NCBI GenBank assembly: GCA_001179505.1
Contig: CDMY01000562.1
Location: 1-64,000, forward strand
DNA length: 64,000 nucleotides
Direction of reading: 5' to 3'
DNA from: Vitrella brassicaformis CCMP3155
Taxonomy: Eukaryota; Protista; Chromerida
The position numbers were made by a program, and so were the translations under genes. The number at the start of each line of letters is the position of its first letter. Position 1 is the stretch's first letter. Shown here one piece after another: positions 28,146 through 47,323 of this stretch. The notes below the pieces were generated by a model. That model was given only the letters and a program-made list of their open reading frames with translations, did not search any database and had not been told where the DNA came from.

Positions 28146-28587
28146 TGCGACACGCACGCACACCTGCAGCACGACAGGCAACAGAGGCACACATGAATGT
28201 GGGCGAAACGCGCTGATCTTTGTCTGAGCTTCGTTCCCCCTTTCTATCTCACCCTGAGAGTAGCTAGGAGAACGATGGATGGGCCAAATGGGCCACAGCA
28301 ATTGGGCCACAGGGTCCTCACTGGAGATGCTGCAAAGAACAGCAGCAGAGCGATAGCTGATGAATCCTCAAGCATGCTACCTGCAGAACTTCGAGTCCCT
28401 GACCTTCCTGGATGCTCAGATGGACAGATCAACAAGCAGATCAGAAGCTACTGATCAAAGGACATGAACACGCGAGGGTCATCCGTGCCCCTCGTTGCCC
28501 CTCTAGCGTACAGGAAGGCGAGGACTCGGAAATACAAATGCATCATTCCTTCGCGTGCGCTCCAGGGTTTCGGTCCCTGCTCCCTCC

Positions 28588-28634
28588 AGGGTTTCAAACC
28601 CCGAAGCCCCACGCAGAGCTCGCACTGCGCTGCA
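28588..28634 (+). promoter_or_regulatory. Shared ~45-bp element, copy 2
   Basis: agggtttcaaaccccgaagccccacgcagagctcgcactgcgctgca, 70 bp upstream of the 28704 ATG. A partial tccagggtttc duplicate precedes it at 28561. Confidence 0.55.
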
Positions 28635-28703
28635 GAGAAGACGCATCGGATTCATACATCCATATATCCATATCTCCGTCCTTGTCCGCCAGATAGACAG
28701 ACG

Positions 28704-30612
28704 ATGTTTGGCGGCTTTCGTTCTGTGCTCCTTGGGTCCCTCTGTGTGGCTGCCACTGTCTCATCGGCATCACGACGACCGCTCGGCTTCATCCCTCAGC
28801 AGAGCGCTCATCGCGTCAGCAGATCTATCACTCCGCACAAACATCGCCCATCACACCCATCGCATCCGCCTGACCTCCGCAGCAGCGGCTCTCTGCTTCA
28901 TTCACCACCTACTGACCCCTACAGCACCAGCAGTAGCAGCAGGAGCAGCAGCAGGAGCAGCAGCAGGAGCAGCAGCAGCACCGGCAGGGGGCTGACGCGT
29001 CTGCAAGCATCGTCGATGGCGGACCTGCAGGAGTATCTGAATGTCAACCCCTGGTCGGTCAGCGCCGAGGACATTGCGGGTCAGCTGTTCGCCGCCTCTC
29101 TCTTCCCGTACCTGGCCTTCCTGTGGTTCCTCTCTCGCCCCGAGACGCGGATGCCGAGGCTGGCCAACTTCGGCTTCCAGTTCTTGCTGGTGTTTGTGGG
29201 CATGACCATTCCCGCTGGCATCCTTGCCAAGGTCTGGTACAACGAGAAGCTCGCCAACGTCGACTACCTCCACGGGGGCGCTGAGTCGTTCCTCACCGTC
29301 ACCAACCTGCTCATCGTTATCGGCATGCGCCAGGCCATTGTTGACGAGGTGCGGCAGCAGCAGCAAGTGCAACAGGGAGTGACGGCGACAGTGAGTGGGG
29401 AGAAGGGCGACTGGGCTGAGGTGACGGCCTCGGCTGTGCTTGGGAGGGTGGACAGCAAGGGCGGAGGGAGGAGGCTGGAGAGCTCGGTGGTTGCGGGTGT
29501 GGCTGTGCTGCTGGGCGCCTTGTCGGTGTTTTCTGATGCGCACCCTGAGCCGTGGAACGCCTTGTCGTTGCCGACGTGGGCCATCCACGTGTCGTCGCTG
29601 GTGGAGTGGCTGATCGCCATGGGGCTGATATGGCAGTACGCCGATGTGCGAAGGAATCCCGCTTGGAAGGGGCTCACATGGGGGTAGGATACGCCCACCG
29701 GGCACACAAACACAGGTGCAGGGAGCGGGTGGATGTGTGTGTGTGTGTGTGTCAGCATGTTGCCGCTTCATTCGAGTGGCATCTGCGCGTGCACGTACCA
29801 CTTCTTCTACAACGCCAGCCAACTTGACTTCCTCGTCGGGCTGCAGGTCGGTGGATGAGATGGTGCCAAGACGAAGACAAGACGCATACCTTGACAGACA
29901 GACAGACAGACAGACAGAAAGACACCGCAGTGTCTATCGCTTCCTTCCCCTATGTGTGCAGGCCTTCCTGACGGTCGTGGGAGACACAACCTGCGCCCTC
30001 GCTGCCTGGCGGATATGGCAATCGGAGAAAAACCTTCCGACGCCCGCCACCGACACACATCCACAAACACAACCACAGCCACAACCACAGCCGCAACCAC
30101 AGCCGCAACAAGCCTCACGACTGCCGGGTAAGTCGAGGCGAGCGAAGGAGGGAGGGAGGCGCCACTCCAACACACCACCCACACACACGTGGCTGTGGTT
30201 CGTGTGTGTGCTATGCAGACGGCGCGACCGTCGCCCAGTACAGTGGTGGAGGTGCGGGCGGGGGGAGCCCTTTGAAGGGGTGGGAGGACCTGGGTGAGCT
30301 CTTCGGGCAGGACTCCAACCTCAGCTTCGGCCTCAAACTCGCAGCCATATCCGTGGCAGTGTCCGCCGCGGTCAAATACGGCGAGGTAGGTTAGCGGGAG
30401 GGAGACGGCCGATGGACTGTCTCACACGAGATGGACCGTCTAAGCGTGAAAGTGATGTGTGTGTGCGTTTGCTGTGTGTACAGTTGTATCTTGACCTGCC
30501 CTTCTCCCCGTCCCTCACCCCGGCGCTGGCCATCATCGGCGTGCCGACACTTCTCAACAGCGTCAAGTGGGCCTTGCGGAGCAGAAACAGCAGCGCCGAC
30601 CTGCCCTTCTGA
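28704..30612 (+). CDS. Plastid-targeted DUF3593 + DUF2499 (Ycf49-like) membrane protein
   Basis: Bipartite leader MFGGFRSVLLGSLCVAATVSSASRRPLGFIP. DUF3593-type LFAASLFPYLAFL...NVDYLHGGAESFLTVTNLL. Ycf49-type HPEPWNALSLPTWAIHVSSLVEW...WKGLTWG|MLPLHSSGICACTYHFFYN...LQ|AFLTVVGDTT. Ends ...SSADLPF*. Confidence 0.88.
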
Positions 30613-31238
30613 CGGTCCACACATGCATGTGCCGCTTTTCTTCCCCGGAGAGGGGTATTTTTCGTGTAAACCGGTGTGGTGCTTTCTTTGTGTGGGGGAT
30701 GGATGGATGGGTGGGGGGTGACGTATGAGGGTGAGATTTTGAGCCTCTCTCTCCATCGGGATCTCTACTGAGAGGCGATGGATGGAGGTATTGATGCCGT
30801 GTGAGAGGTGGGGCTTTTTCCATGTGGGTGCACTGCGACCGACCGCTTTGGTCTGGACATTGTTGGGGTGGTGGGGTGGGGTGGGGTGGGGTGGGGTGGA
30901 AGGTGTTAAAGCTCATTCAAAGTCAGTGATAGGCAACAGGTACGGGGCACGGACACACGGAGACACACACAGAGTTGCCGGCTGGTCCGACTCTGCTGGT
31001 TTGGTTGCACCAACCACATCCATCCATCCATCCAGACACACACAAGGGAAGGTATGTAGCTATAAAATCCGTCGCGCAACATAGTGGACGTGCAGGCACT
31101 CACCTCACTCGTCCTCCTACTCTTCATTCGTTGACTATACACCACCCCACACACAGACGTCCTCGCCGCCCATTCGCTCCCAGGCTGGCTCCCTGGCTCT
31201 AGATATAGCTCCATGGGTCGCTTCCGCGACCACCGAAA

Positions 31239-31538
31239 NNNNNNNNNNNNNNNNNNNNNNNNNNNNNNNNNNNNNNNNNNNNNNNNNNNNNNNNNNNNNN
31301 NNNNNNNNNNNNNNNNNNNNNNNNNNNNNNNNNNNNNNNNNNNNNNNNNNNNNNNNNNNNNNNNNNNNNNNNNNNNNNNNNNNNNNNNNNNNNNNNNNNN
31401 NNNNNNNNNNNNNNNNNNNNNNNNNNNNNNNNNNNNNNNNNNNNNNNNNNNNNNNNNNNNNNNNNNNNNNNNNNNNNNNNNNNNNNNNNNNNNNNNNNNN
31501 NNNNNNNNNNNNNNNNNNNNNNNNNNNNNNNNNNNNNN
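31239..31538. other. Assembly gap (300 N)
   Basis: Run of N between the Ycf49-like and ClpB genes. Confidence 0.99.
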
Positions 31539-31759
31539 CCCCACAGAGGACAGAGAGGAGTGGGTGCGTACCAAGACGATCGAGTATGAAGCCCTCTGTC
31601 TCTCTCTCTCTCTCCTCTTGCCCTCTCCCTCCCTTGCCTTGCCCGCCTGAGTGGATGGGCGTGGCGTACGACTGACTGCCTGTACACGCGACACGGACTA
31701 GTGAGCTTCTCACTTGGCTGCTTGCTTCATTCATCAGGGGATCGATCACACATGGGGAG

Positions 31760-32826
31760 CTATGACAGCACCGGTTCTTGTGGCTGCGACGGCGGGGACG
31801 GCGGCACCTCGGTCGTGCGGCCGGGGACGCTCAGCACCAGACGGTCGTTCTTCACCGCAACCGATATCAGGTCGCCTGCACATCACGGTGAGAGTGTGTG
31901 TGCCCATCCTCCTCGATCGTCCCTCCTCACTGACTGACCTTCTTTGAAGTCTCCCTTGAGGATCCCCTTGGCGATGGGTGTCTCGACTTCCCTCTGGATG
32001 GTCCTCTTGAGCGGCCGCGCGCCGTACTGCGGGTCGTAGCCGATGTCGGCAATGTAGGCCATGGCGTCCCCGTCGACGCGCAGCTTGATGTTCTTGTCGA
32101 ACAGACGCTCGGCAACCTTGGCCAGCTCCAGACCTACGATCTCACGCAACTCTGATGACACAAACATAGAGAGAAAGAAAGAGGGAGAGAGAGGGTAAGT
32201 GGTTGCCTTGGTTGGTCGATCAGTGCCTGCCTGGCATGCTGGCTGCTTACCGTCTTTGACAAGCGAGTCGAAAATGACAAACTCGTCGATGCGATTGAGG
32301 AACTCGGGGCGGAACGTCTCGCGCACGGCGTTCATCACACGCCTGCACATGACACAACACAACACATATCACATAACACATTTCCCACTCTGTGTGGCCC
32401 GTGCCCCTTTCTCTCTCTCTCTCTCTCGTTGGCGTACGTCTTGATCTCTTGCGACAGAGATCGGTCTCCGGCGAGTTCCAGGATGCTGGTTGAGCCGATG
32501 TTGGAGGTGAATATGATGATGCAGTTCCTGAAGTTGACGGTGTTGCCCTTGCTGTCCGTCACGCGCCCGTCGTCCAGGATCTGCAGCAAGATGTTAAACA
32601 CGTCGGGATGGGCCTTCTCCCTGCACACACACACACAGACACGCCGCGGCAAACCAAACCGACACACAAGTGTATGGTGTTTGTCGTGTGTCTGTCTGTG
32701 CTTCGTGTGGCTGACTACTGACATTTCGTCGAAGAGGATGACCGAGTAGGGCTTCCGTCTGACTGCGTCGGTGAGCTGCCCGCCCTGCTCGTAGCCAACG
32801 TACCCCGGGGGCGCGCCGATGAGCCG

Positions 32827-32862
<36 letters not shown>

Positions 32863-32891
32863 CAGGCGGATCATGGCGTCCTCTACACACA

Positions 32892-32924
<33 letters not shown>

Positions 32925-35900
32925 GGAGAGACAGATCAACATCACCTCAATCAACAGATCGGCCCGTGCGCTGCCTACCCGTGTCAAACATGTACTGCGC
33001 CAGCGCTTTGCAGAGCTCGGTCTTGCCGACGCCAGTGGGTCCGAGGAAGACAAGCGACGCGATCGGCCTGTCCGGGTCGTTGAGCCCCGCCCTGCTCCTC
33101 TGAATGGCCTCCGACACCACCTTGACAGCGTCGTTCTGGCCCACGACCCTCTTGTGCAGCTGGTCCTCGAGATTCATGAGCTTGTCCCTCTCAGTCTGGC
33201 TGAGCTTCTCGGCGGGTATTCCGGTCCACATGGAGATGACGGTAGCGATGTCCTCGACAGTGACCTCGTCGCGGAGGAGCCGCTGGCCGCCCGCCGTCTC
33301 CTCGTTGTACTTGTCTTCCTGGTCACGAAGCTGCTTGTCCAAATCAGGCAGCGTCTCGAACCGAAGCTCAGCTGCACGATTGAGGTCGAAGTCACGCTCG
33401 GCTGCAGGCAGGCAGGCAGGCATACACACACAGAGGGAGGAGGGATTGAGGGGCCCGTTGGCTTGGCTGTGTGTTTGTGGATGTGTGTGGATGGTGGATG
33501 TGTGTGCGTGTGTGTGTACCTTTATCGATTTCGACTTTGACGACATCGATTCTCTCCTTGAGAGCCCTGATCATGTCCACGCGCGACTTCTCCTTGCTCC
33601 ACGCATCCGTCAGAGAACCCTGCACACACACGCACGCACGCAGGAGCAGTCATTCAATCAGCCGGCCTCTGTGGATGGATGGATGGATGAGTACGTCAAG
33701 GTGTGGTGTCCGCTGTGCACCTACCTGTTCAGCCTTCAGCCTCTCGATTTGGCTCTCGATGCTGCGCAGCCGCAGCAGCTCCTGCTCGTCCTCGAGAGTG
33801 CGCTTCCCATCTGCACAGAGATACACACACATACACAGAGTCACAACATACTTCCCATTTCCTGCCTGCCACTGACCTCCGGTGATTGAGATTTTCTCCA
33901 TCTCCAGCTGGATGAGTTTCCTGTCGATCTCGTCGAGCTGCACGGGCTTGCTCGTGACGGCAATCTTGAGCCTCGCGGCGGCCTCGTCCACCAGGTCGAT
34001 GGCCTTGTCGGGCAGGAACCGGTCGCTGATGTACCTGTGGCTCAGCTGGGCCGCAGCCACGAGGGCCGAGTCGAGAATGCGGACACCGTGGTGCACCTCG
34101 TAGCGCTCCTTGAGGCCGCGGAGGATCGACACGGTGTCCTCGACCTGCGGCTCGTCCACCGACACCTGCTGGAAGCGGCGCTCGAGGGCCTTGTCCTTCT
34201 CGATGTACTGGCGGTACTCGTTCATCGTCGTCGCGCCGATGCAACGCAACTCGCCGCGGGCAAGCATCGGCTGGACAATCACACAGACAGATCGACACAG
34301 ACAGATGGACATAGAGAGGTGAGGAGACGGAGATGGATAAGATCGATCGTGTTGGCGTCGGTCGCACCTTGAGGAGGTTTCCAGCGTCCATGGCGCCGTC
34401 CGATGCGGCCCCCGCGCCGACGACGGTGTGTATCTCGTCGATGAACATGACGATCTGCCCCTCGGCCTCCTGCACCTCCTTCAGGACCGCCTTGAGCCTC
34501 TCCTCAAACTCGCCCCGGTACTTGGCACCTGATCCATGAATGGCGGCAATGGATGGATGGATGGCTATGTGAGCGGCTGGCTGGCTGACCTGCGATCATG
34601 CCGCCCATGTCGAGTGCGACGAGTCTCCTGTTCTTGAGGGAGTCGGGGACGTCACCCGACACGATCCGCTGGGCCAGCCCCTCAACGATGGCAGTCTTGC
34701 CCACACCTATATATAGGTAGACAGACAGCCACACGTACAACCAACAGATGGATGAACAGTCAGCGTGGGGCGGGCGGCCTGTGCCCATCCATCCATCCAT
34801 GTGCGTGGCCTTACCAGGGTCGCCGAGCAGGATGGGATTGTTCTTGGTCCGTCGGGAGAGGATCTGCACCGTCCGCCTGATCTCGGTGTCACGACCTGCA
34901 CGCAATGACACAGACACAGAATGAAGGACATGCAGCCTCTTATTGTCTGTCACGTCACCGCAACACGCACACACACCGGCAGAGGTTCATAAGGACACCT
35001 CCTCGCCTACCGATGACGGGGTCGAGGCGGCCGGCCTTTGCAGCTTTGGTGAGGTCCCTGCTGTACTTCTCAAGTGCCTCGTAGCTGGCCTCTGGGTTCT
35101 TGGACGTGACCTTCTTGGACCCCCTGATCTGATCCACACCGTCCTTGAGCTTGTTCATCGACACATTCTGACGCTGCAGAGCCGTCCGAGTGAACCTGAC
35201 GCACACACAAAACAAGGAGATGGACAAAGGGGAGTGGGGGCCCCCCGTGTGTGGGTGTGTGGTGTGTACTTGGTGTCCTCGACGGCGAGGGCGAGCATCA
35301 TGTGTTCGATGGAGATGTACTCGTCTCTGTATTCCTTCTTGTATCGCCTTGCGGTGGTGAGGACGTTCTGCAGCCCCCTTCCCAGCACCTTCTGCTCGCC
35401 GCCGCCAAACCCCATCATCTTGGGCATGCTCTTCAGGTGCTGGTCAAGCTCCTCCTGCAGCGTCTTGACGTTCGCACCGGCCTTGAACAGAATGCGCTGC
35501 GCCAGCCCGTCAGGACCCTCATCCAGCAACGCTGACACACACACACACACACCCCGACCCAAACCAGTGCATCATCCACACAGCAGGTACGCCGCCGCCC
35601 GTACGGCCCGTGTATGCCGTTGCCTCCCTCCCTCCCTCCCCCACTCACCTTTGAGGAGCATCTCGGCCTCGACGTATCCCGACTGGTATTTGTCGGCCAC
35701 CTGGTTGAGCTGACTCATGGCGTCCCATGCCTTCTCCGTGTAGTCGTTGGCGTTGATCGTGTACCCATCTTGCATCCGCAGACTCGTCAAGGGCGCCACA
35801 CGACGCACGCCGCTCGGCAGCAACGGCCGCCGATGCCGAGCAATGGGAGCACGCACGGCTGACGCATCAGACAGGCAGACAGATGCACAGAACGACACAC

Positions 35901-36197
35901 AAGCAAGGCGACAGAGATGCGACGAGACGACAGACAAGCCGTGTCTGTGTTGTGGGCGGCTGTCTGTCTGTGCGTACCTGGCATGGCGAGAAAAGCTGAC
36001 GATGCATCACTGATGGCTATGGGGAGCCTCAGATCTGCAGGTGACACATCCATCCATCATAGCATTCCATGCACCCACCGACAGCACAGGCAGCAGTCCG
36101 GTGTGGGACACCCATGCGTTTCATGCATACCTTCCGCAGCAGTGGGCATGCCAAACAGCACGGGAGCCAGCAGCAGCAACAACGTCAGCTGCATCAT
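31760..36197 (-). CDS. clpB: ClpB/Hsp100 disaggregase, plastid-targeted
   Basis: Signal [16 protein letters not shown] plus transit region ([10 protein letters not shown]), Clp N-domain, LEKYSRDLT...[17 protein letters not shown]|[33 protein letters not shown], coiled-coil M-domain, [36 protein letters not shown] and [11 protein letters not shown]. Ends ...QEPVLS* at 31760. Confidence 0.97.
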
Positions 36198-36553
36198 GAC
36201 CCTCTCCCTCCCAGCACAGCGGATCTTCGCAAATAAGGAACCAGATCTTGGGCAGATGGCCTTCTCGGGGGTCGCGATGGCTGGAAGACAAGAGAGAATG
36301 AGGCAAGACACACGCGAATTAGCTCGCGTTTCGGGCTAGAGCCGATCTGGAGTTCGGCCGTGCCATAGGCTTGTTGCGGTGCAGAGATCTGGACTGCACT
36401 TGTGCGTTCAGTGTGCTTCTTGTCGGTGAACGACGGCCCCGATGAAGCCATGATTCAGCCAGTCAATTTGTCGCACTGACGAGTGTGGAGGTTGGTTCGA
36501 CGCGCAGGGTAGCTGATTGGTGCTCCCGAGGCTCTCCCGAGTAGTGCCAAATA

Positions 36554-38604
36554 ATGGATAGTGCTCAAGCTCCGGAACCAAAACGACTCAAGAGAGATGC
36601 TCAGCCTGGTGAGCAACAATCAAGCAGGAGAAAGGGCCACACTTGTGAGCACTCATCACCTGTGTGTGGGGTGTGTGTGTGTGTGTGCAGCTGGAGCAAG
36701 GAAGATATCCGTTGCAGACCTTGTGCCCCTCGCTGCAGGACTGCCTGCAGCGAGAGGAGTGCCTTCCATCGAGCTGACAAAGACGGATTCTCATGAGTTC
36801 ATCGGCCACAAGTATCGGGACGACATGCTGGAGCATATCAAGAGTTTCTGCGACCTGGAGAGCGGCTCACCGCGCGGCCCTCAGCCCCGGAGCGACAACC
36901 AGAATGCCCTCCCTACGCGAATCCCTCCTATGGCCCTCACTCGTCATCCTTCAGGAGGCAAGACGAGGACGCTTAAGGAGATTGGCCTCGCGCTTCGCAA
37001 GCAGGACATCTTCTCCCTCTTCATCACATTCAGCGACCTCACTCAGTATGATGCTGCAATCGAGCGGGACCGCACATGGCTGCAGTCGCTGCTTTTGCGC
37101 ATCGGCTGGGCGGCTGCCAGGGACGACGTGCGGGGGAGTGTAGGGGACGACTTCTCAAGGTGGCTGACCGAAGTGGACGTTACCAAGGACACCATTTGCA
37201 AGTGGCTAGGTGATGCCGTCTGCGTCCTTCTTGTTGATGAGCTGAATAAATTGATGGTGGGAGAAGGCCGACAGCAATTTCCTGATGAGGGAGCGATCGC
37301 GGCGGAATTTCTTCGGGCAGAGTTCGTCGACAAGCGTGGCCGCTATCTCGTATTCTCAAGCCACTTCACAGAGACGGGCACGAAGCTCACGGTGTTCATG
37401 GAGAGTCTAAGCAATCGGGATGTCCTTCGCCCCCTCTTGCCGGTGATCACATCTGTTGATCAAGCGGCCGTCCTCAGCCAGGAGGCCGCCTCGGCTCCCA
37501 AGCTATATTATCTTGGATTGACACCCGCCCTAGTTCACAAGGCGTTTGCCGTTGAGAAACGACCCGCTACTTGTGTTGATCAGCTCTTCGACAGGCTCCC
37601 GAAACCGCCCTTCACCAGGGCCACGCTGCGAGCCATGATCATGCTTGCGCTGGACGGAGCTGCGCATCGTGTGGCGGGGTTGGGCGGTTGGGCTGCGGCA
37701 TTGGATGCGTTTGTCGATGACCCACTTCGACTTCCTATCGGGACCCCATCGTACACGTGGTCGCCATGCTTTCTGGCAGCTGCCTGTGAGCAACTTGTTG
37801 GTGTTGGCGAGTTCCGCCAGTCTCTTCGTCAAGGCCTGTGGCGGATCGTCGCCAACCTACGGCAGCTGGCTGAAGCAACAGAAGGGTCCGGCGTGCAGTG
37901 GGAGGGCGTTTGTGCTGCGGCACTCATCCTACGGATGCTGCAGAGCGACGTTGGAGATTATAAACCCTCAAATCTGCATGCAGAAGCCAGAGCAATCCTG
38001 CCTACTGCGGTTCTCAATGGTCGGTGACACACAGATGTGTAAACACAAAAGCTCTGGTCGATAGATACAAATGAGTAGTTCATCAGTCTTTCGTGTTTTG
38101 TGCTGTTCGTGTGGGTGTCATGTCAGGATGTGAATTTGGAGGTGCCTTTCGTCCAACCGACTCAGCTGGCTTCATCGGACCGATTGCTCTCCAAACATCG
38201 CTCTCCTGCGCCGGATGGTCGAGACCGAGATATCAAGACCATCCTACCGGCAGCAGGGGCTCGACAAGGGCATTATGGCGCTTTTTGTACAGCCGGCTGC
38301 CAGCAGTTTTCCTTGGTATGACATGTTCATCTTCGTCTGTTGCGACGGGCGGGTGGAGGAGATCTGGGGGTACCAGTCGAAGACAGGCAGTGGCACTCCT
38401 GCAGACGCGCAGACGTTGGTGTCGAAAGAAGTCGATAAGTCAGTGTGGCTGCGCGGTGATGCAAGTCAAGGAGTGCGGAGGGATAATGGGTGGATCGTCG
38501 CCTCTCGGACAGCAATTGAGGCGTTGTGCGGCTTCAGCTTGAAACGCTCATGCCCTGCCAATTGGCTGTTGGATCCAAGGGTCTGGGAGCGGGACGAGAA
38601 GTAG
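36554..38604 (+). CDS. Crinkler/RHS-type P-loop NTPase + restriction-endonuclease-fold protein (possible frameshift near 38180)
   Basis: N-terminal NLS-like PKRLKR, Walker A-like MALTRHPSGGKT, Walker B VLLVDE, YLVFSSH, GVQWEGVCAAALILR, and C-terminal P-x4-FPWYD...WGYQSK (D...QxK endonuclease-like motif). Introns at about 36619-36690 and 38021-38126. Confidence 0.68.
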
Positions 38605-38890
38605 TCAAGGGTCTGGGCGGGTGGCCAGGTGTTCTTTGGGTGTTCTCGATATGGCCTTCCCTACTGCCCGAACGAGGCGGAGGGGCTGGACCTGGCACAC
38701 CCGCAGACACAAATAGGGTACGCGCATACAGACACACACAGATGATGGCTGTGGCAACGCATCTGCATCTGTGCGTGTGTCTAGACGTGAGAAGGGTCTT
38801 TAGTGGTTCACGTTTCGGCGTTCGTCTCTGTGTCGGCCTCGTCCTTTGGCGCTCCTCAGTCGTCGTCGACGTCGTCCGCCGTCGGGTCTG

Positions 38891-40619
38891 ATGGACAGCG
38901 GTGAGGAGTCGGGCGACGACCCCTTCCTCAGACCACACCGACTGACAACATCCACAAACGTCGAATTAGAAGGTATGCAGCCACACACATACCGACCGTA
39001 TCATTCGTGACATACCGGCGACACAATCACTTTGGCTGTCTGTCTGTCTGTATGTCTGTGTGTGTGTGGGTGTTTCAGTCGACGAGGAGGAGCTTTGCTT
39101 TTCCGGTCGGCATCCATCGGCGCAGACGTCGGACCCTGGTCGGCCAGCCACATAATATACGCACACTCAAGTCAAGTGTGCTCCCTGCACTCACTGTGTG
39201 TGCGCTCGGTTGGGTTGGGTGTGTGCAGCTCTGCAGAGCTTCCACAATACCATGCACGACGCGACGGACGGGTCAGTCGGTGCACTCACGCCCACACGCC
39301 CCTTCTGCTGCACCATGTGTGTGTGTGTGTGTGTGTGTGGATGGGTGCCGCAGTTGGTGGTCGAGGGCACCCGTTCACTGTCGATGGCGATATCTGATCT
39401 GCACGAGCGCGTGCGGCGCCAGAGGAGGGCCTGCGGGGCCGTCATCGTCAACCTTCTCCACCACAGACGTGTCGCAGCAGCTGGTGGAGCTGTGTCAAAA
39501 CAGCACCGGGGAGCAGCCAGACGGGGGTCGCACCCCGAGTGAGCATCAACTCGTACCCTCACTGCCCCCTCCTGAGCTCACCCCAGGAAGCAACAGGTAC
39601 GTGACACAGGGGGGAGGAGGAGCTCACCCGATACATTGCTGAGGTGTGTTGTTTGCCTTGGTGCAGCCCTCTGCCACTTGAGTCGCCTGTGGCTGCGTTG
39701 GTGGACGAGTTGGACCGGTGCGGTGCGAGACTGATCTTTCTGCGAGAATAGCGAGGGCACGCGAGCACCTGCAATACATACACCACAACGTCGACGAGTG
39801 AGCGCGCTGCATGTACACATACACCGATGGAAGAGCAGGCAACGACGAGGCTTTGCTTCAGTCTGATTGTAGCTGTTGGTGAGGCTGCCTTGCGAGGGGA
39901 GACTGAAGGACCTACAACGAGACAACCAAGAGCTCGTACAGCGCGATGCAGACCGGTGCGCTGACAAACGGATCTACACACATGACCCCCTCCATCCATT
40001 TGTCTGCCCGTGTCTGTCTGCCTTGGGTGCGAGTCTATTCAGGCTGACCAAGGCGAAGCTCAACACATTCACGTAGGTGGCCGACGTCATGCAGTTCCAG
40101 CATGCGGCGAGCAACGAGAGCAGACGCCTGCAAGCCCTTAAAGACCGATCCCACGAGCATCTCACGAGGCCTCATGATGAGTCCTTCAAGCGTGACGTGG
40201 AGCGGCGTATCGCGGCGCGCGACAGGGAGGCAGCTGAGCAGCTGCGACAGTACGAGGAGGCAACAGAGACAAGGGTACGAGAGATCCAATCGGACATGCA
40301 GGCGCAGCTGGAGGAGGAGCGGGCCAAGCGTGAGGAGGAGCTCAGGGCCAAGGCCAAGAGCACGTGAGGTGATATTCATGACTTGTCGCCACAATAGTGC
40401 ATCTGCAGAGGTGGGTCAACATATGAAGTCTGTGTGTGGTGGTCAGGGGCAGGCAGGCATCTTTTGTGTGTGTGTGTGTGTGTGTGTGTAGGCTGTTTCG
40501 AGCGAATGAAGAAGGAGTACACCAGCAAGAAGCCGTCGTGTCCAATCTGCCGAAAGCCTGGACATTCGGGCCTCGTTTGGGAACAGGGGTGGCACTCCGA
40601 TGACTGCCTGACTGACTGA
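38891..40619 (+). pseudogene. Decayed coiled-coil + C-terminal RING-finger gene
   Basis: Exon 1 is MDSGEESGDDPF...ELE|. Stops follow in later exons. Coiled-coil ...EQLRQYEEATETRVREIQSDMQAQLEEERAKREEE. Half-RING VIFMTCRH...|CFERM...PSCPICRK lacks the first CxxC and is in a shifted frame. Confidence 0.45.
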
Positions 40620-44363: not shown

Positions 44364-47323
44364 ATGTGGATCACCGAATCCCCCGCCGTCCTTCAGCTGT
44401 TACTGTGGCTGTCATCCTACTTGGCCACCACATCTACCCTTGCGGAGCGCCTCACCATCCCGCACACAACCGTCCTACACAGCCGTGGCGCCAACCCATG
44501 GCCATCCCACCCCGTCGGTGAGGTCGCAGCCGACGACGACAGGCCGACGCACAAGATGCCTCCCACCGTCCCCCGCGACCCACACAGGTTCTGGCGCCGG
44601 CTGCGGTCGTTTGGCAACATCGTGAGGTCGACCGAGGGCTCGTTGGACGTGCCGTCCCGTCGCGTGGCTCAGGTGCGTCAGGTGGTTGAGCCAGTGCCCG
44701 AGACCTTCTACTACATCATGGACATCCTCAACGCCAAGGTGTATGACGTCGTCAGCGAGACCCCGCTGGACCGGGCCCCCAACCTCTCCAAGAAGATCGG
44801 CAACACGGTGCTCCTCAAGCGGGAGGACCTGCAGCCCGTCTTCTCTTTCAAGATCCGAGGGGCCTACAACAAGATCCGCTCCCTCACCGCCGAGCAGCGC
44901 GCCAAGGGCATCATAGCCTGCTCGGCGGGCAATCACGCGCAGGGGGTGGCGTACAGCGCCAAGAAGCTGGGGATATCGGCCAAGATCTACATGCCCGAGA
45001 TCACGCCGTCCATCAAGGTCAACGCCGTGCGGTCCTACGGGAGCGGGGTGGAGGTGATACTGGTGGGGAGCAACTTCGACGAGGCCTTTGCCGCCTGCAT
45101 GGAGTGCGCCAGGCGGGAGGGCAGGACGCTCATCCACCCATTTGATGACCCACTGGTCATTGCTGGCCAAGGTGAGAAAGAGAATCGGACAGCACCCCAC
45201 CCATGTGTGTGTGTGTGTGTGTGTGTGTCAGGCACGATAGGGATGGAGGTGCTGAAGCAGACGACATCTCAGCCGATCGACGGCATCTTCATCTGCTGCG
45301 GCGGCGGCGGGCTGCTCAGCGGCGTGGGCGCATTCATCAAGGCCGTCGCGCCACACATCAAAATCTACGGCGTCGAAACCGCTGATGCTGCTGGTAGGCA
45401 ACTCTATCACCGTCATTCGGTCCCTCAGTCAGTCAGTCAAATCAAGAGAGCGAAGTGGATGGATGGGCGGGCCTGTGTGGGTATGTGTTGTGTGTGCGTG
45501 TGTAGCGATGACAGAGAGCCTGAAGGCGTGTCGTTTGGTGGAGTTGGACACGGTGGGCACCTTTGCCGACGGGGCGGCCGTCCGCAGAGTGGGCGCCAAC
45601 ACTTTCAAAGTCTGCCAGGTGCGTCCACACGTCCACACGTCCACACATCCACACACACAGACACACAGACACACGCACACACGTGCACATCGACGACATG
45701 TGTGATTGGGGTGAATGGGATGAATGTGACTACAGGAGGTAGTGGACGAGATGATCACTGTGAGCACGGACGAGGTGTGTGCGGCCATCAAGGACGCTTT
45801 CACAGACATCAGGGTCGTCCTGGAGCCTGCGGGGGCACTCGCTATCGGTACACACACAACACAGAGACAGAGAGAGGGGGATGGATGGCTGTGTGTCGGT
45901 TCAGCTGGCATGAAGAGCTTCGTTGAGCGGACGGGCGCCAAAGGGAAGACATTCGTGGCCATCGCATCCGGTGCACACACAGACAGACAGAGACACACAC
46001 AGAGAGATCCTTCCATCCATTCATCTGAGCACTCACTCTGTCATCCATCGTGATCGCTATATGGTCAGGTGCCAACATGGACTTCGACCGTCTCCGGTTC
46101 GTGTCTGAGCGGGCAGACACGTCCGAGTCGCTCGTCTCGGTCATCGTACCGGAAAGGCCCGGCACCTTCAGACAGCTGTACGACATCATCTACCCACGGT
46201 ACGGTACGCTGCGTACCCTCCCCCCCCACACACACAACCCAATTCCCCTGCATGTGCATCGTCGTCGTCTCTCTCTCTCTCTTTCTCTGTGTGTGTGTGT
46301 GTTGCAGTGAGGTGACAGAGTTCAGTTATCGGCTGTGCAGCCAGCCCGAGGACGTCAAGGGGTCGGGCAATGGCAACGGCAACGGGGCGGCAGCCAGGGC
46401 CGCCAACCAGGCGCACATAATGATGAGCTACAGACCCAAAAACAGAAAAGACGAACAGGATGTAAGCACAGCACACACATAGTTTAAACCCCCCCGCGCA
46501 GCACACACACGCCTTAATGGATGGATGGATGGATGCGGTGCATGGCCATGTGTGCAGGTGGAGAACAAGCTGAGGCGGGCGGGGTTCATCACCATGAACC
46601 TCAACTCAAATGAACTTGCAAAGGTACACACACACGTGTCTGGACCATCCCTCCCCTCCCTGCGGTCATCCATCCATCCATCCCTCCATCCGTCCATTCC
46701 CGTGTGCTTCTACCCTACCCAGACCCACGGTCGTCACCTGGTGGGTGGCCGCGCCCCGCTGGCCAAGGACGAGGTGCTTTATCGAGTGGAGTTCCCCGAA
46801 AAGCCCGGCGCTCTGCGGAAATTCCTCTACTCATTGAGCTCCAAGCGGAACATTTCCCTGTTCCATTACAGGTCACACACACACTCAACCAACACAGAGG
46901 GCGAGGGGAGATGCCGCCAGGGGGCAGTGCAGTGTGGGTGGCTGTGAATGAATATGGTTGTGATGTGATGTGATGTGATGCTGTGTGTGCAGGAACCATG
47001 GTTCTGACATCGGGCGTGTGTTGGTGGGCATCCAGGTGCCCCCAGAGCACAGGGGAGAGTTCCAGGTCAGTCAGCCACACAGCCACACAGTCACGTCATG
47101 CACTCACACAGACAGACAGACAAGCATACGGCCCTCCCTCCTCTCTCTCCCTGCTTTGTTTGTTTGGTTCATTCAGGACACGTTGCACACATTGCAGGCG
47201 GCGGGGTACCAGTGGATAGAGGAGACCTACAACCCCGTCTACAGGCAATTCCTCAGCAACAGAACCGCACCACCCAAGGGACGGCGCAAGACACCAACTT
47301 CTGCAAGGACAACCGACGCATGA
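44364..47323 (+). CDS. ilvA: Biosynthetic threonine dehydratase (threonine ammonia-lyase), predicted plastid-targeted
   Basis: [20 protein letters not shown] (PLP-binding Lys), [25 protein letters not shown]|[30 protein letters not shown] and [16 protein letters not shown]. Two C-terminal ACT-like repeats (PERPGTF; FPEKPGAL; FHYRNHG). Signal + transit leader. Confidence 0.96.

Follow-up and report, generated by a model that had tools for sequence, protein, structure and literature searches.

Among the described systems, the proteins closest to the gene studied here are those of the CR (Crinkler/RHS) type. In two papers that summarise it, the commonest CR architecture defined by Zhang et al. 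(2016) is a header followed by an NTPase, a helix-turn-helix (HTH) and a REase, with toxicity presumed to lie in the REase and regulation in the NTPase, and free-living eukaryotes are listed as carriers of CR proteins as well (PMC5289972, PMC11064341). One view reported in the first of them is that the NTPase-REase modules derive from transposon-linked prokaryotic genes (PMC5289972).

Other systems share features with this gene. The AAA+ ATPases of STAND/ORC type (2qen, CED-4, the NB-ARC of plant NLRs, Avs3/Avs4) have the same arrangement of nucleotide-binding domain, helical lid and winged helix as the Vitrella gene, and STAND immune proteins typically add sensor repeats, which the Vitrella gene lacks. 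Tn7 pairs an AAA+ ATPase with a nuclease (TnsC/TnsA); in the Vitrella family, in contrast, the ATPase and the nuclease-like domain are fused in one polypeptide.

We analyzed a gene located on a 64,000-nucleotide stretch of contig C562 of Vitrella brassicaformis CCMP3155 (the window), and searched the genome of this organism (72.7 Mb in 1064 contigs). The gene has the domain order of CR proteins (NTPase, helix-turn-helix, REase-like). It differs from them in that the window copy and most of its family have no header, and in the window copy the nuclease-like half is out of frame. We consider that the locus is probably a headerless paralogue, and a probably decaying one, in a family that expanded in Vitrella and has a body of CR-type NTPase, winged helix and nuclease-like domain.

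Gene model and reading frame of the window copy

The features of the gene are the following (window coordinates):

36554-36608, plus strand: exon 1, ATG and 18 codons (MDSAQAPEPKRLKRDAQP), from the sequence
36609-36690, plus strand: intron 1, GTGAGC...CAG (GT...AG), with a TG microsatellite inside
36691-38019, plus strand: exon 2, N-terminal region, predicted AAA+ (STAND/ORC-type) NTPase, helical lid, winged helix and conserved helical region
38020-38126, plus strand: intron 2, 107 nt, donor as in the paralogues (DNA alignment with C477)
38127-38175, plus strand: first piece of exon 3, in frame with exon 2 (CEFGGAFRPTDSAGF), with the conserved C.FGG at which the C-terminal domain begins
38175-38176, plus strand: frame break, 10 bp absent relative to paralogue C477 (pairwise DNA alignment)
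38176-38604, plus strand: second piece of exon 3, nuclease-like D...QxK domain (38176-38601), out of frame, with its own stop at 38602-38604

Exon 1 includes a basic KRLKR patch (a putative nuclear signal), agrees with the N-terminus of the annotated product P0001 and is not long enough for a header domain. The splicing of intron 1 gives the P0001 junction (..DAQP/AGARK..), and exons 1 and 2 joined in frame correspond to P0001. The public annotation sets the donor of intron 2 4 nt downstream (38024) and then meets a stop at 38131-38133; its product has 464 aa and ends in ..NGRM just past exon 2.

The C946 paralogue is represented by a transcript contig, in which an intron is spliced out at the position of intron 2 of the window gene. 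This contig, from JGI sample 3300017148 (Ga0186167_103750, L047; P0003), is filed among the JGI metagenomes but is a spliced Vitrella transcript, identical (100%) to C946 (L003) in five exon blocks, and it gives direct evidence on the intron positions of the family. TG/CA microsatellites at 36660-36690, 38720-38745, and 39030-39075 mark introns and flanks, and they account for the "CVCVCV" runs found in many spurious ORFs of the window.

The frame of exon 2 runs on for 16 codons at the opening of exon 3 (CEFGGAFRPTDSAGFI, 38129-38175), where the C, F, and G of C.FGG are invariant in the Vitrella alignment. At 38175/38176, the DNA alignment with C477, which is 85% identical, has a clean 10-bp gap in the window copy. 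Past this break, the exon 2 frame encodes unrelated residues until a stop at 38540-38542. The products of the nearest paralogues (P0002, P0003, P0005) keep their frame across this point. Although out of frame, the domain has 142 open codons and conserves its D, Q, and K. The first-pass annotation described the gene as one protein uniting NTPase and REase; the motifs of both halves are present, but they lie in two different frames, separated by the 10-bp deletion. Because the nuclease-like domain is out of frame, the sequence as assembled cannot yield it under either intron 2 donor, and this rules out for the window copy the "self-nuclear nuclease" that had been suggested.

Searches were done separately with the exons and with both pieces of exon 3; C477 stood for the intact C-terminal domain. 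Between the window gene and C477, dN/dS was 0.90 over exon 2 (438 codons) and 0.59 over the C-terminal part, and other paralogue pairs gave values of 0.2-0.66. A dN/dS near 1 could reflect diversifying selection as an alternative to decay. Neither an exact pattern across the deletion point nor a protein-guided scan of metagenome contigs found an independent read or a transcript from the window copy, a weak negative, as these searches may omit the Vitrella genome.

Predicted ATPase and nuclease-like domains

The motifs and the HTH of exon 2, with the elements of the structure model that hold them, are:

36942-36965, plus strand: variant Walker A loop RHPSGGKT, between the strand 80-83 and the helix 90-103 of the model
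37224-37241, plus strand: Walker B VLLVDE, strand 177-182 of the model
37617-37760, plus strand: predicted winged helix-turn-helix, helices 309-321 and 324-336, hairpin 337-340 and 353-356 of the model

The P-loop, MALTRHPSGGKT (36930-36965), has its GGKT at 36954-36965, and the QWEGVCAAALILR helix lies in exon 2 as do the P-loop and Walker B. A variant P-loop and a Walker B had been proposed at these positions, and conservation in 72 diverse relatives bears them out: the G and K of the P-loop and the D of Walker B are invariant, and the P-loop T, the R that follows it, and the Walker B E are each conserved in at least 90%. The family consensus of Walker A is RxSRGGKT, in which the first glycine of GxxxxGKT is replaced family-wide, a difference from the STAND/ORC AAA+ proteins. 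On sequence grounds, both the ATPase and the C-terminal motifs exceed chance.

The AlphaFold model of exon 2 (pLDDT 88.8, pTM 0.90) was compared with known structures. The VIA matches include the archaeal Walker ATPase PAB2304 (2qen; Z 13.5, 266 residues aligned), the entries 9h2l (Z 13.1) and 6j5t (Z 12.0), plant NLR resistosomes (Z 12-13), ORC/Cdc6 (Z 11-12.5), TnsC (Z 9.6-11.5, with MuB also among the matches and within that range), and Avs3/Avs4 (Z 10-11). Foldseek matched CED-4 (E 4e-6). The VIA alignments with STAND and ORC proteins extend through residues 366-382. From the model, exon 2 can confidently be assigned to the AAA+ ATPases of STAND/ORC type with lid and winged helix (residues 309-356). 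The sequence identity to these proteins is 8-13%.

At the sequence level, matches to known families were few. Neither exon 1 nor exon 2 had a Pfam match at E ≤ 1, and no Ubl header was present, in agreement with the headerless copy proposed earlier; there were weak Pfam matches to AAA_16, ATPase_2, and AAA_22. The scans of the window pieces with Pfam, NCBIfam, and PADLOC had no match, and when the protein and the family profile were searched against PDB sequences, chance P-loop matches were all that appeared. C-terminal sensor repeats (TPR, LRR, WD40) were absent from the exon 2 model and from the Pfam results. Past the winged helix there is a short helical segment and then the nuclease-like domain, which in the Vitrella family would take the place of the effector of STAND NTPases.

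The C-terminal WYD...GYQSK segment described by the first-pass annotation is present, and its D, Q, and K are almost invariant among 89 sequences (YD...GYQxK; D in 87/88, Q in 86/89, K in 83/89). In the window, the D of WYD is encoded at 38320-38322, and the Q and K of GYQSK at 38374-38376 and 38380-38382. The window copy's C-terminal domain is 83% identical to that of C477, whose model (pLDDT 81.7) has the order strand-helix-strand-strand-strand-strand-helix, with helices at 27-38 and 130-144 and strands at 52-57, 69-75, 78-88, and 107-112. In this model, D68 starts the second strand of the meander, and Q86 and K88 are at the facing end of the third.

A helix followed by a three-stranded meander is common to PD-(D/E)xK nucleases and to the C-terminal model, and so is the layout in which the D opens the second strand and the QxK faces it on the third. 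Two differences were found: the Vitrella family has Q in place of the second acidic residue, and the model has a loop instead of the usual second helix. Foldseek had no match to the C-terminal model at E ≤ 0.001, and the best VIA-align match was a weak one, to Tk-TIP26 (Z 4.0). About one third of the weak VIA matches listed are PD-(D/E)xK nucleases (Z 2.4-3.6) aligned over the same core, including EcoO109I, McrC, Bax1, the nuclease domain of DdmD, NotI, Can2, PaqCI, BsaWI, Hjc, NucS, Card1, and AF1548; the transpososome entry 9bw1 had Z 2.5. A protein language-model look-up with the C-terminal domain alone did not point to a usable family; its score of 0.83 for an RHSP cluster is taken as a lead only. 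The earlier assignment to a PD-(D/E)xK REase has the strand order and the conserved triad on its side, and the weakness of the structure matches against it. Judged from the model, a PD-(D/E)xK nuclease fold is likely for this domain.

The family in Vitrella and in other protists

When each half of the gene was searched alone against the Vitrella genome, the ATPase exon matched 61 places and the C-terminal piece 25; both halves taken together indicate about 40 loci, and at least this number. Some copies consist of one uninterrupted frame (645-784 codons), and C630 is a single-ORF copy. The copies C651 (MMETSP) and C946 (transcript contig) are transcribed. Three annotated members, P0004, P0012, and P0013, also lack the C-terminal domain; the short annotated Vitrella proteins may be incomplete gene models.

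Several loci are clustered, with at least five copies on C345 within 60 kb (26500-86000; L030, L031, L040-L042). In four of the C345 copies surveyed QxK is changed to KxV or KxA (GYKCV was seen), so the putative catalytic lysine is gone from this subgroup. Of the 29 Vitrella copies surveyed, 14 lack one or more residues of the D/Q/K triad; the window copy keeps all three. Short fragments with 85-92% DNA identity to the P-loop region of the window gene occur at C295:180147-182297, and they are probably remnants of further dead copies.

A profile built from ten Vitrella members retrieved 725 cluster representatives at E ≤ 0.001, of which 169 were at E ≤ 1e-30. The relatives occur in diatoms (Nitzschia, Bacillariaceae, Attheya), Chromera velia, Symbiodinium necroappetens, the aphelid Amoeboaphelidium, and many short marine metagenome contigs. 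Outside Vitrella the identity is 25-30%, and most relatives have 500-650 residues and no additional domain. A word-based search with a diverse alignment recovered hardly anything but Vitrella proteins and nothing new, and a scan of viral contigs found no relative.

Extra domains were observed in some relatives: SAP in P0193 and P0081, BRCT in P0053, SAM in P0145, and UCH in P0064 (precomputed). The Pfam E values for SAP, BRCT, and SAM range from 5e-9 to 8e-5. These fusions to DNA- or chromatin-binding and signalling domains are hints of an intracellular role on nucleic acids.

The relatives with N-terminal Crinkler headers are:

P0030 (Nitzschia): Crinkler headers (PF20147), two in tandem, immediately upstream of the module, 29.6 bits, above the curated cut-off of 24.6
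P0097: N-terminal Crinkler header, 23.7 bits, below the cut-off
P0034: N-terminal Crinkler header, 21.4 bits, below the cut-off
P0177: N-terminal Crinkler header, 19.4 bits, below the cut-off

The headers of these four proteins are also similar to each other. The header-bearing relatives match the family profile at E 1e-42 to 1e-59 (residues 289-802 of P0030 at E 9e-59). The CR-type body that had been proposed for the window gene is therefore backed by relatives in which a Pfam Crinkler header precedes the same module. None of the Pfam models, RHSP (PF07999) among them, matches the body, and a language-model look-up lists a Crinkler cluster (0.93), as a lead only. Judged from the header fusions, this subfamily is probably among the CR families of Zhang et al. 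(2016). In the window, the upstream DNA shared with C477 begins just 181 bp before the ATG.

Origin and possible roles of the locus

The DNA that the window gene shares with its closest paralogue is:

36373-38700, plus strand: shared block of 2.3 kb, 85% identical to C477:98019-100286 (blastn)

C477 is the sole close DNA copy of the window gene, and the block consists of the gene with flanks of about 180 bp and 100 bp. Inverted repeats, direct repeats and a target-site duplication are all absent from its ends, and no transposase, integrase, reverse transcriptase, or other transposon gene was found nearby.

The neighbouring genes are ordinary ones. At 31000-35940 on the minus strand, in head-to-head orientation to the window gene, is a multi-exon gene for a ClpB/Hsp104-type chaperone (Clp_N, AAA_lid_9, AAA_2), and the N-terminus of its product has the look of a targeting leader. 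An ORF at 28464-29687 (plus strand) has DUF3593 and DUF2499 (E 7e-37 and 5e-15), a pair known from plastid and cyanobacterial proteins. A 520-codon ORF at 44364-45926 (plus strand) encodes a pyridoxal-phosphate-dependent enzyme domain (PALP, E 8e-55).

A mobile origin had been suggested for the gene, which would then be cargo or enzyme of an element inserted in the ClpB promoter, such as one descended from a TnsC/TnsA-like transposon. We regard this as very improbable. The family is multi-copy, TnsC and MuB are among the fold matches of the ATPase (Z 9.6-11.5), and the D...QxK triad resembles that of TnsA. The transposon-linked prokaryotic origin reported as a view in the literature points the same way (PMC5289972). 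However, the matches of the ATPase to STAND and ORC proteins are better than those to TnsC, and the locus has neither the transposase nor the element ends of Tn7. The number of close copies and the comparison of flanks, with a single 85% copy, a shared block of gene and short flanks, no terminal repeats or target duplication, and no transposon enzymes nearby, largely refute the mobile-element reading for the window copy. More probably, the copy arose through a gene duplication of 2.3 kb beside ClpB, with no recognisable transposition.

The state of the copy allows two further explanations. The 10-bp deletion could be an assembly error, in which case the gene would be intact and encode a headerless NTPase-nuclease of about 600 aa inside the alga's own cell; it could serve in defence against invading DNA, as prokaryotic STAND-nuclease systems (Avs) do, or be a selfish nuclease. 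The length of the open out-of-frame domain (142 codons) with its D/Q/K, the transcription of the sister copies C946 and C651 and the correct splicing of the former, the likeness of the ATPase to Avs3/Avs4 (Z 10-11), and the SAP and BRCT domains of some relatives, which fit an intracellular role on DNA, are in favour of this explanation. We nevertheless find it unlikely, as a clean 10-bp gap between well-aligned sequences is atypical for an assembly error, dN/dS is about 0.9 in the ATPase exon, the gene is without the sensor repeats of STAND immune proteins, and no transcript of the window copy was found in the searches described above. The last point also weighs against a functional truncated form, in which the 464-aa ATPase with winged helix would regulate the intact members or partner them in the manner of an antidote. 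Exon 2 has an intact Walker A, Walker B, and winged helix, and P0004, P0012, and P0013 end similarly before the C-terminal domain; yet these proteins may be incompletely modelled, and dN/dS, at 0.90 for 438 codons, does not point to purifying selection on the ATPase. We assign this form a slightly lower probability than an intact gene.

We thus prefer to see the locus as a headerless paralogue that is probably in decay. The intact members would bind nucleic acids, or assemble, in an NTP-dependent manner through their STAND/ORC AAA+ ATPase and winged helix, and the ATPase would gate a C-terminal PD-(D/E)xK-like nuclease with a D...QxK triad. From the window copy, at most an ATPase and winged-helix protein with a nonsense tail, or the annotated product of 464 aa, would be made.

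As a single copy, this headerless and frame-broken paralogue of a module known from Crinkler/RHS proteins matters little. The family matters more: its members in marine protists number in the hundreds and are unannotated, mostly headerless and some fused to SAP, BRCT, or SAM, and it raises the question of the role of a Crinkler-type body inside its own cell. A speculative answer, to which we give a low probability, is that the headerless family of chromerids and diatoms is a eukaryotic intracellular immune system, an NTP-gated nuclease acting against viral or invading DNA, similar to the prokaryotic STAND-nuclease (Avs) defence, and that the Crinkler effectors are its header-equipped, exported offshoots. 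If this were true, the window copy would belong, as a decaying member, to a repertoire evolving by birth and death. The transcribed paralogues that carry the triad, such as C946, are natural material to test what such a body does in its own cell.
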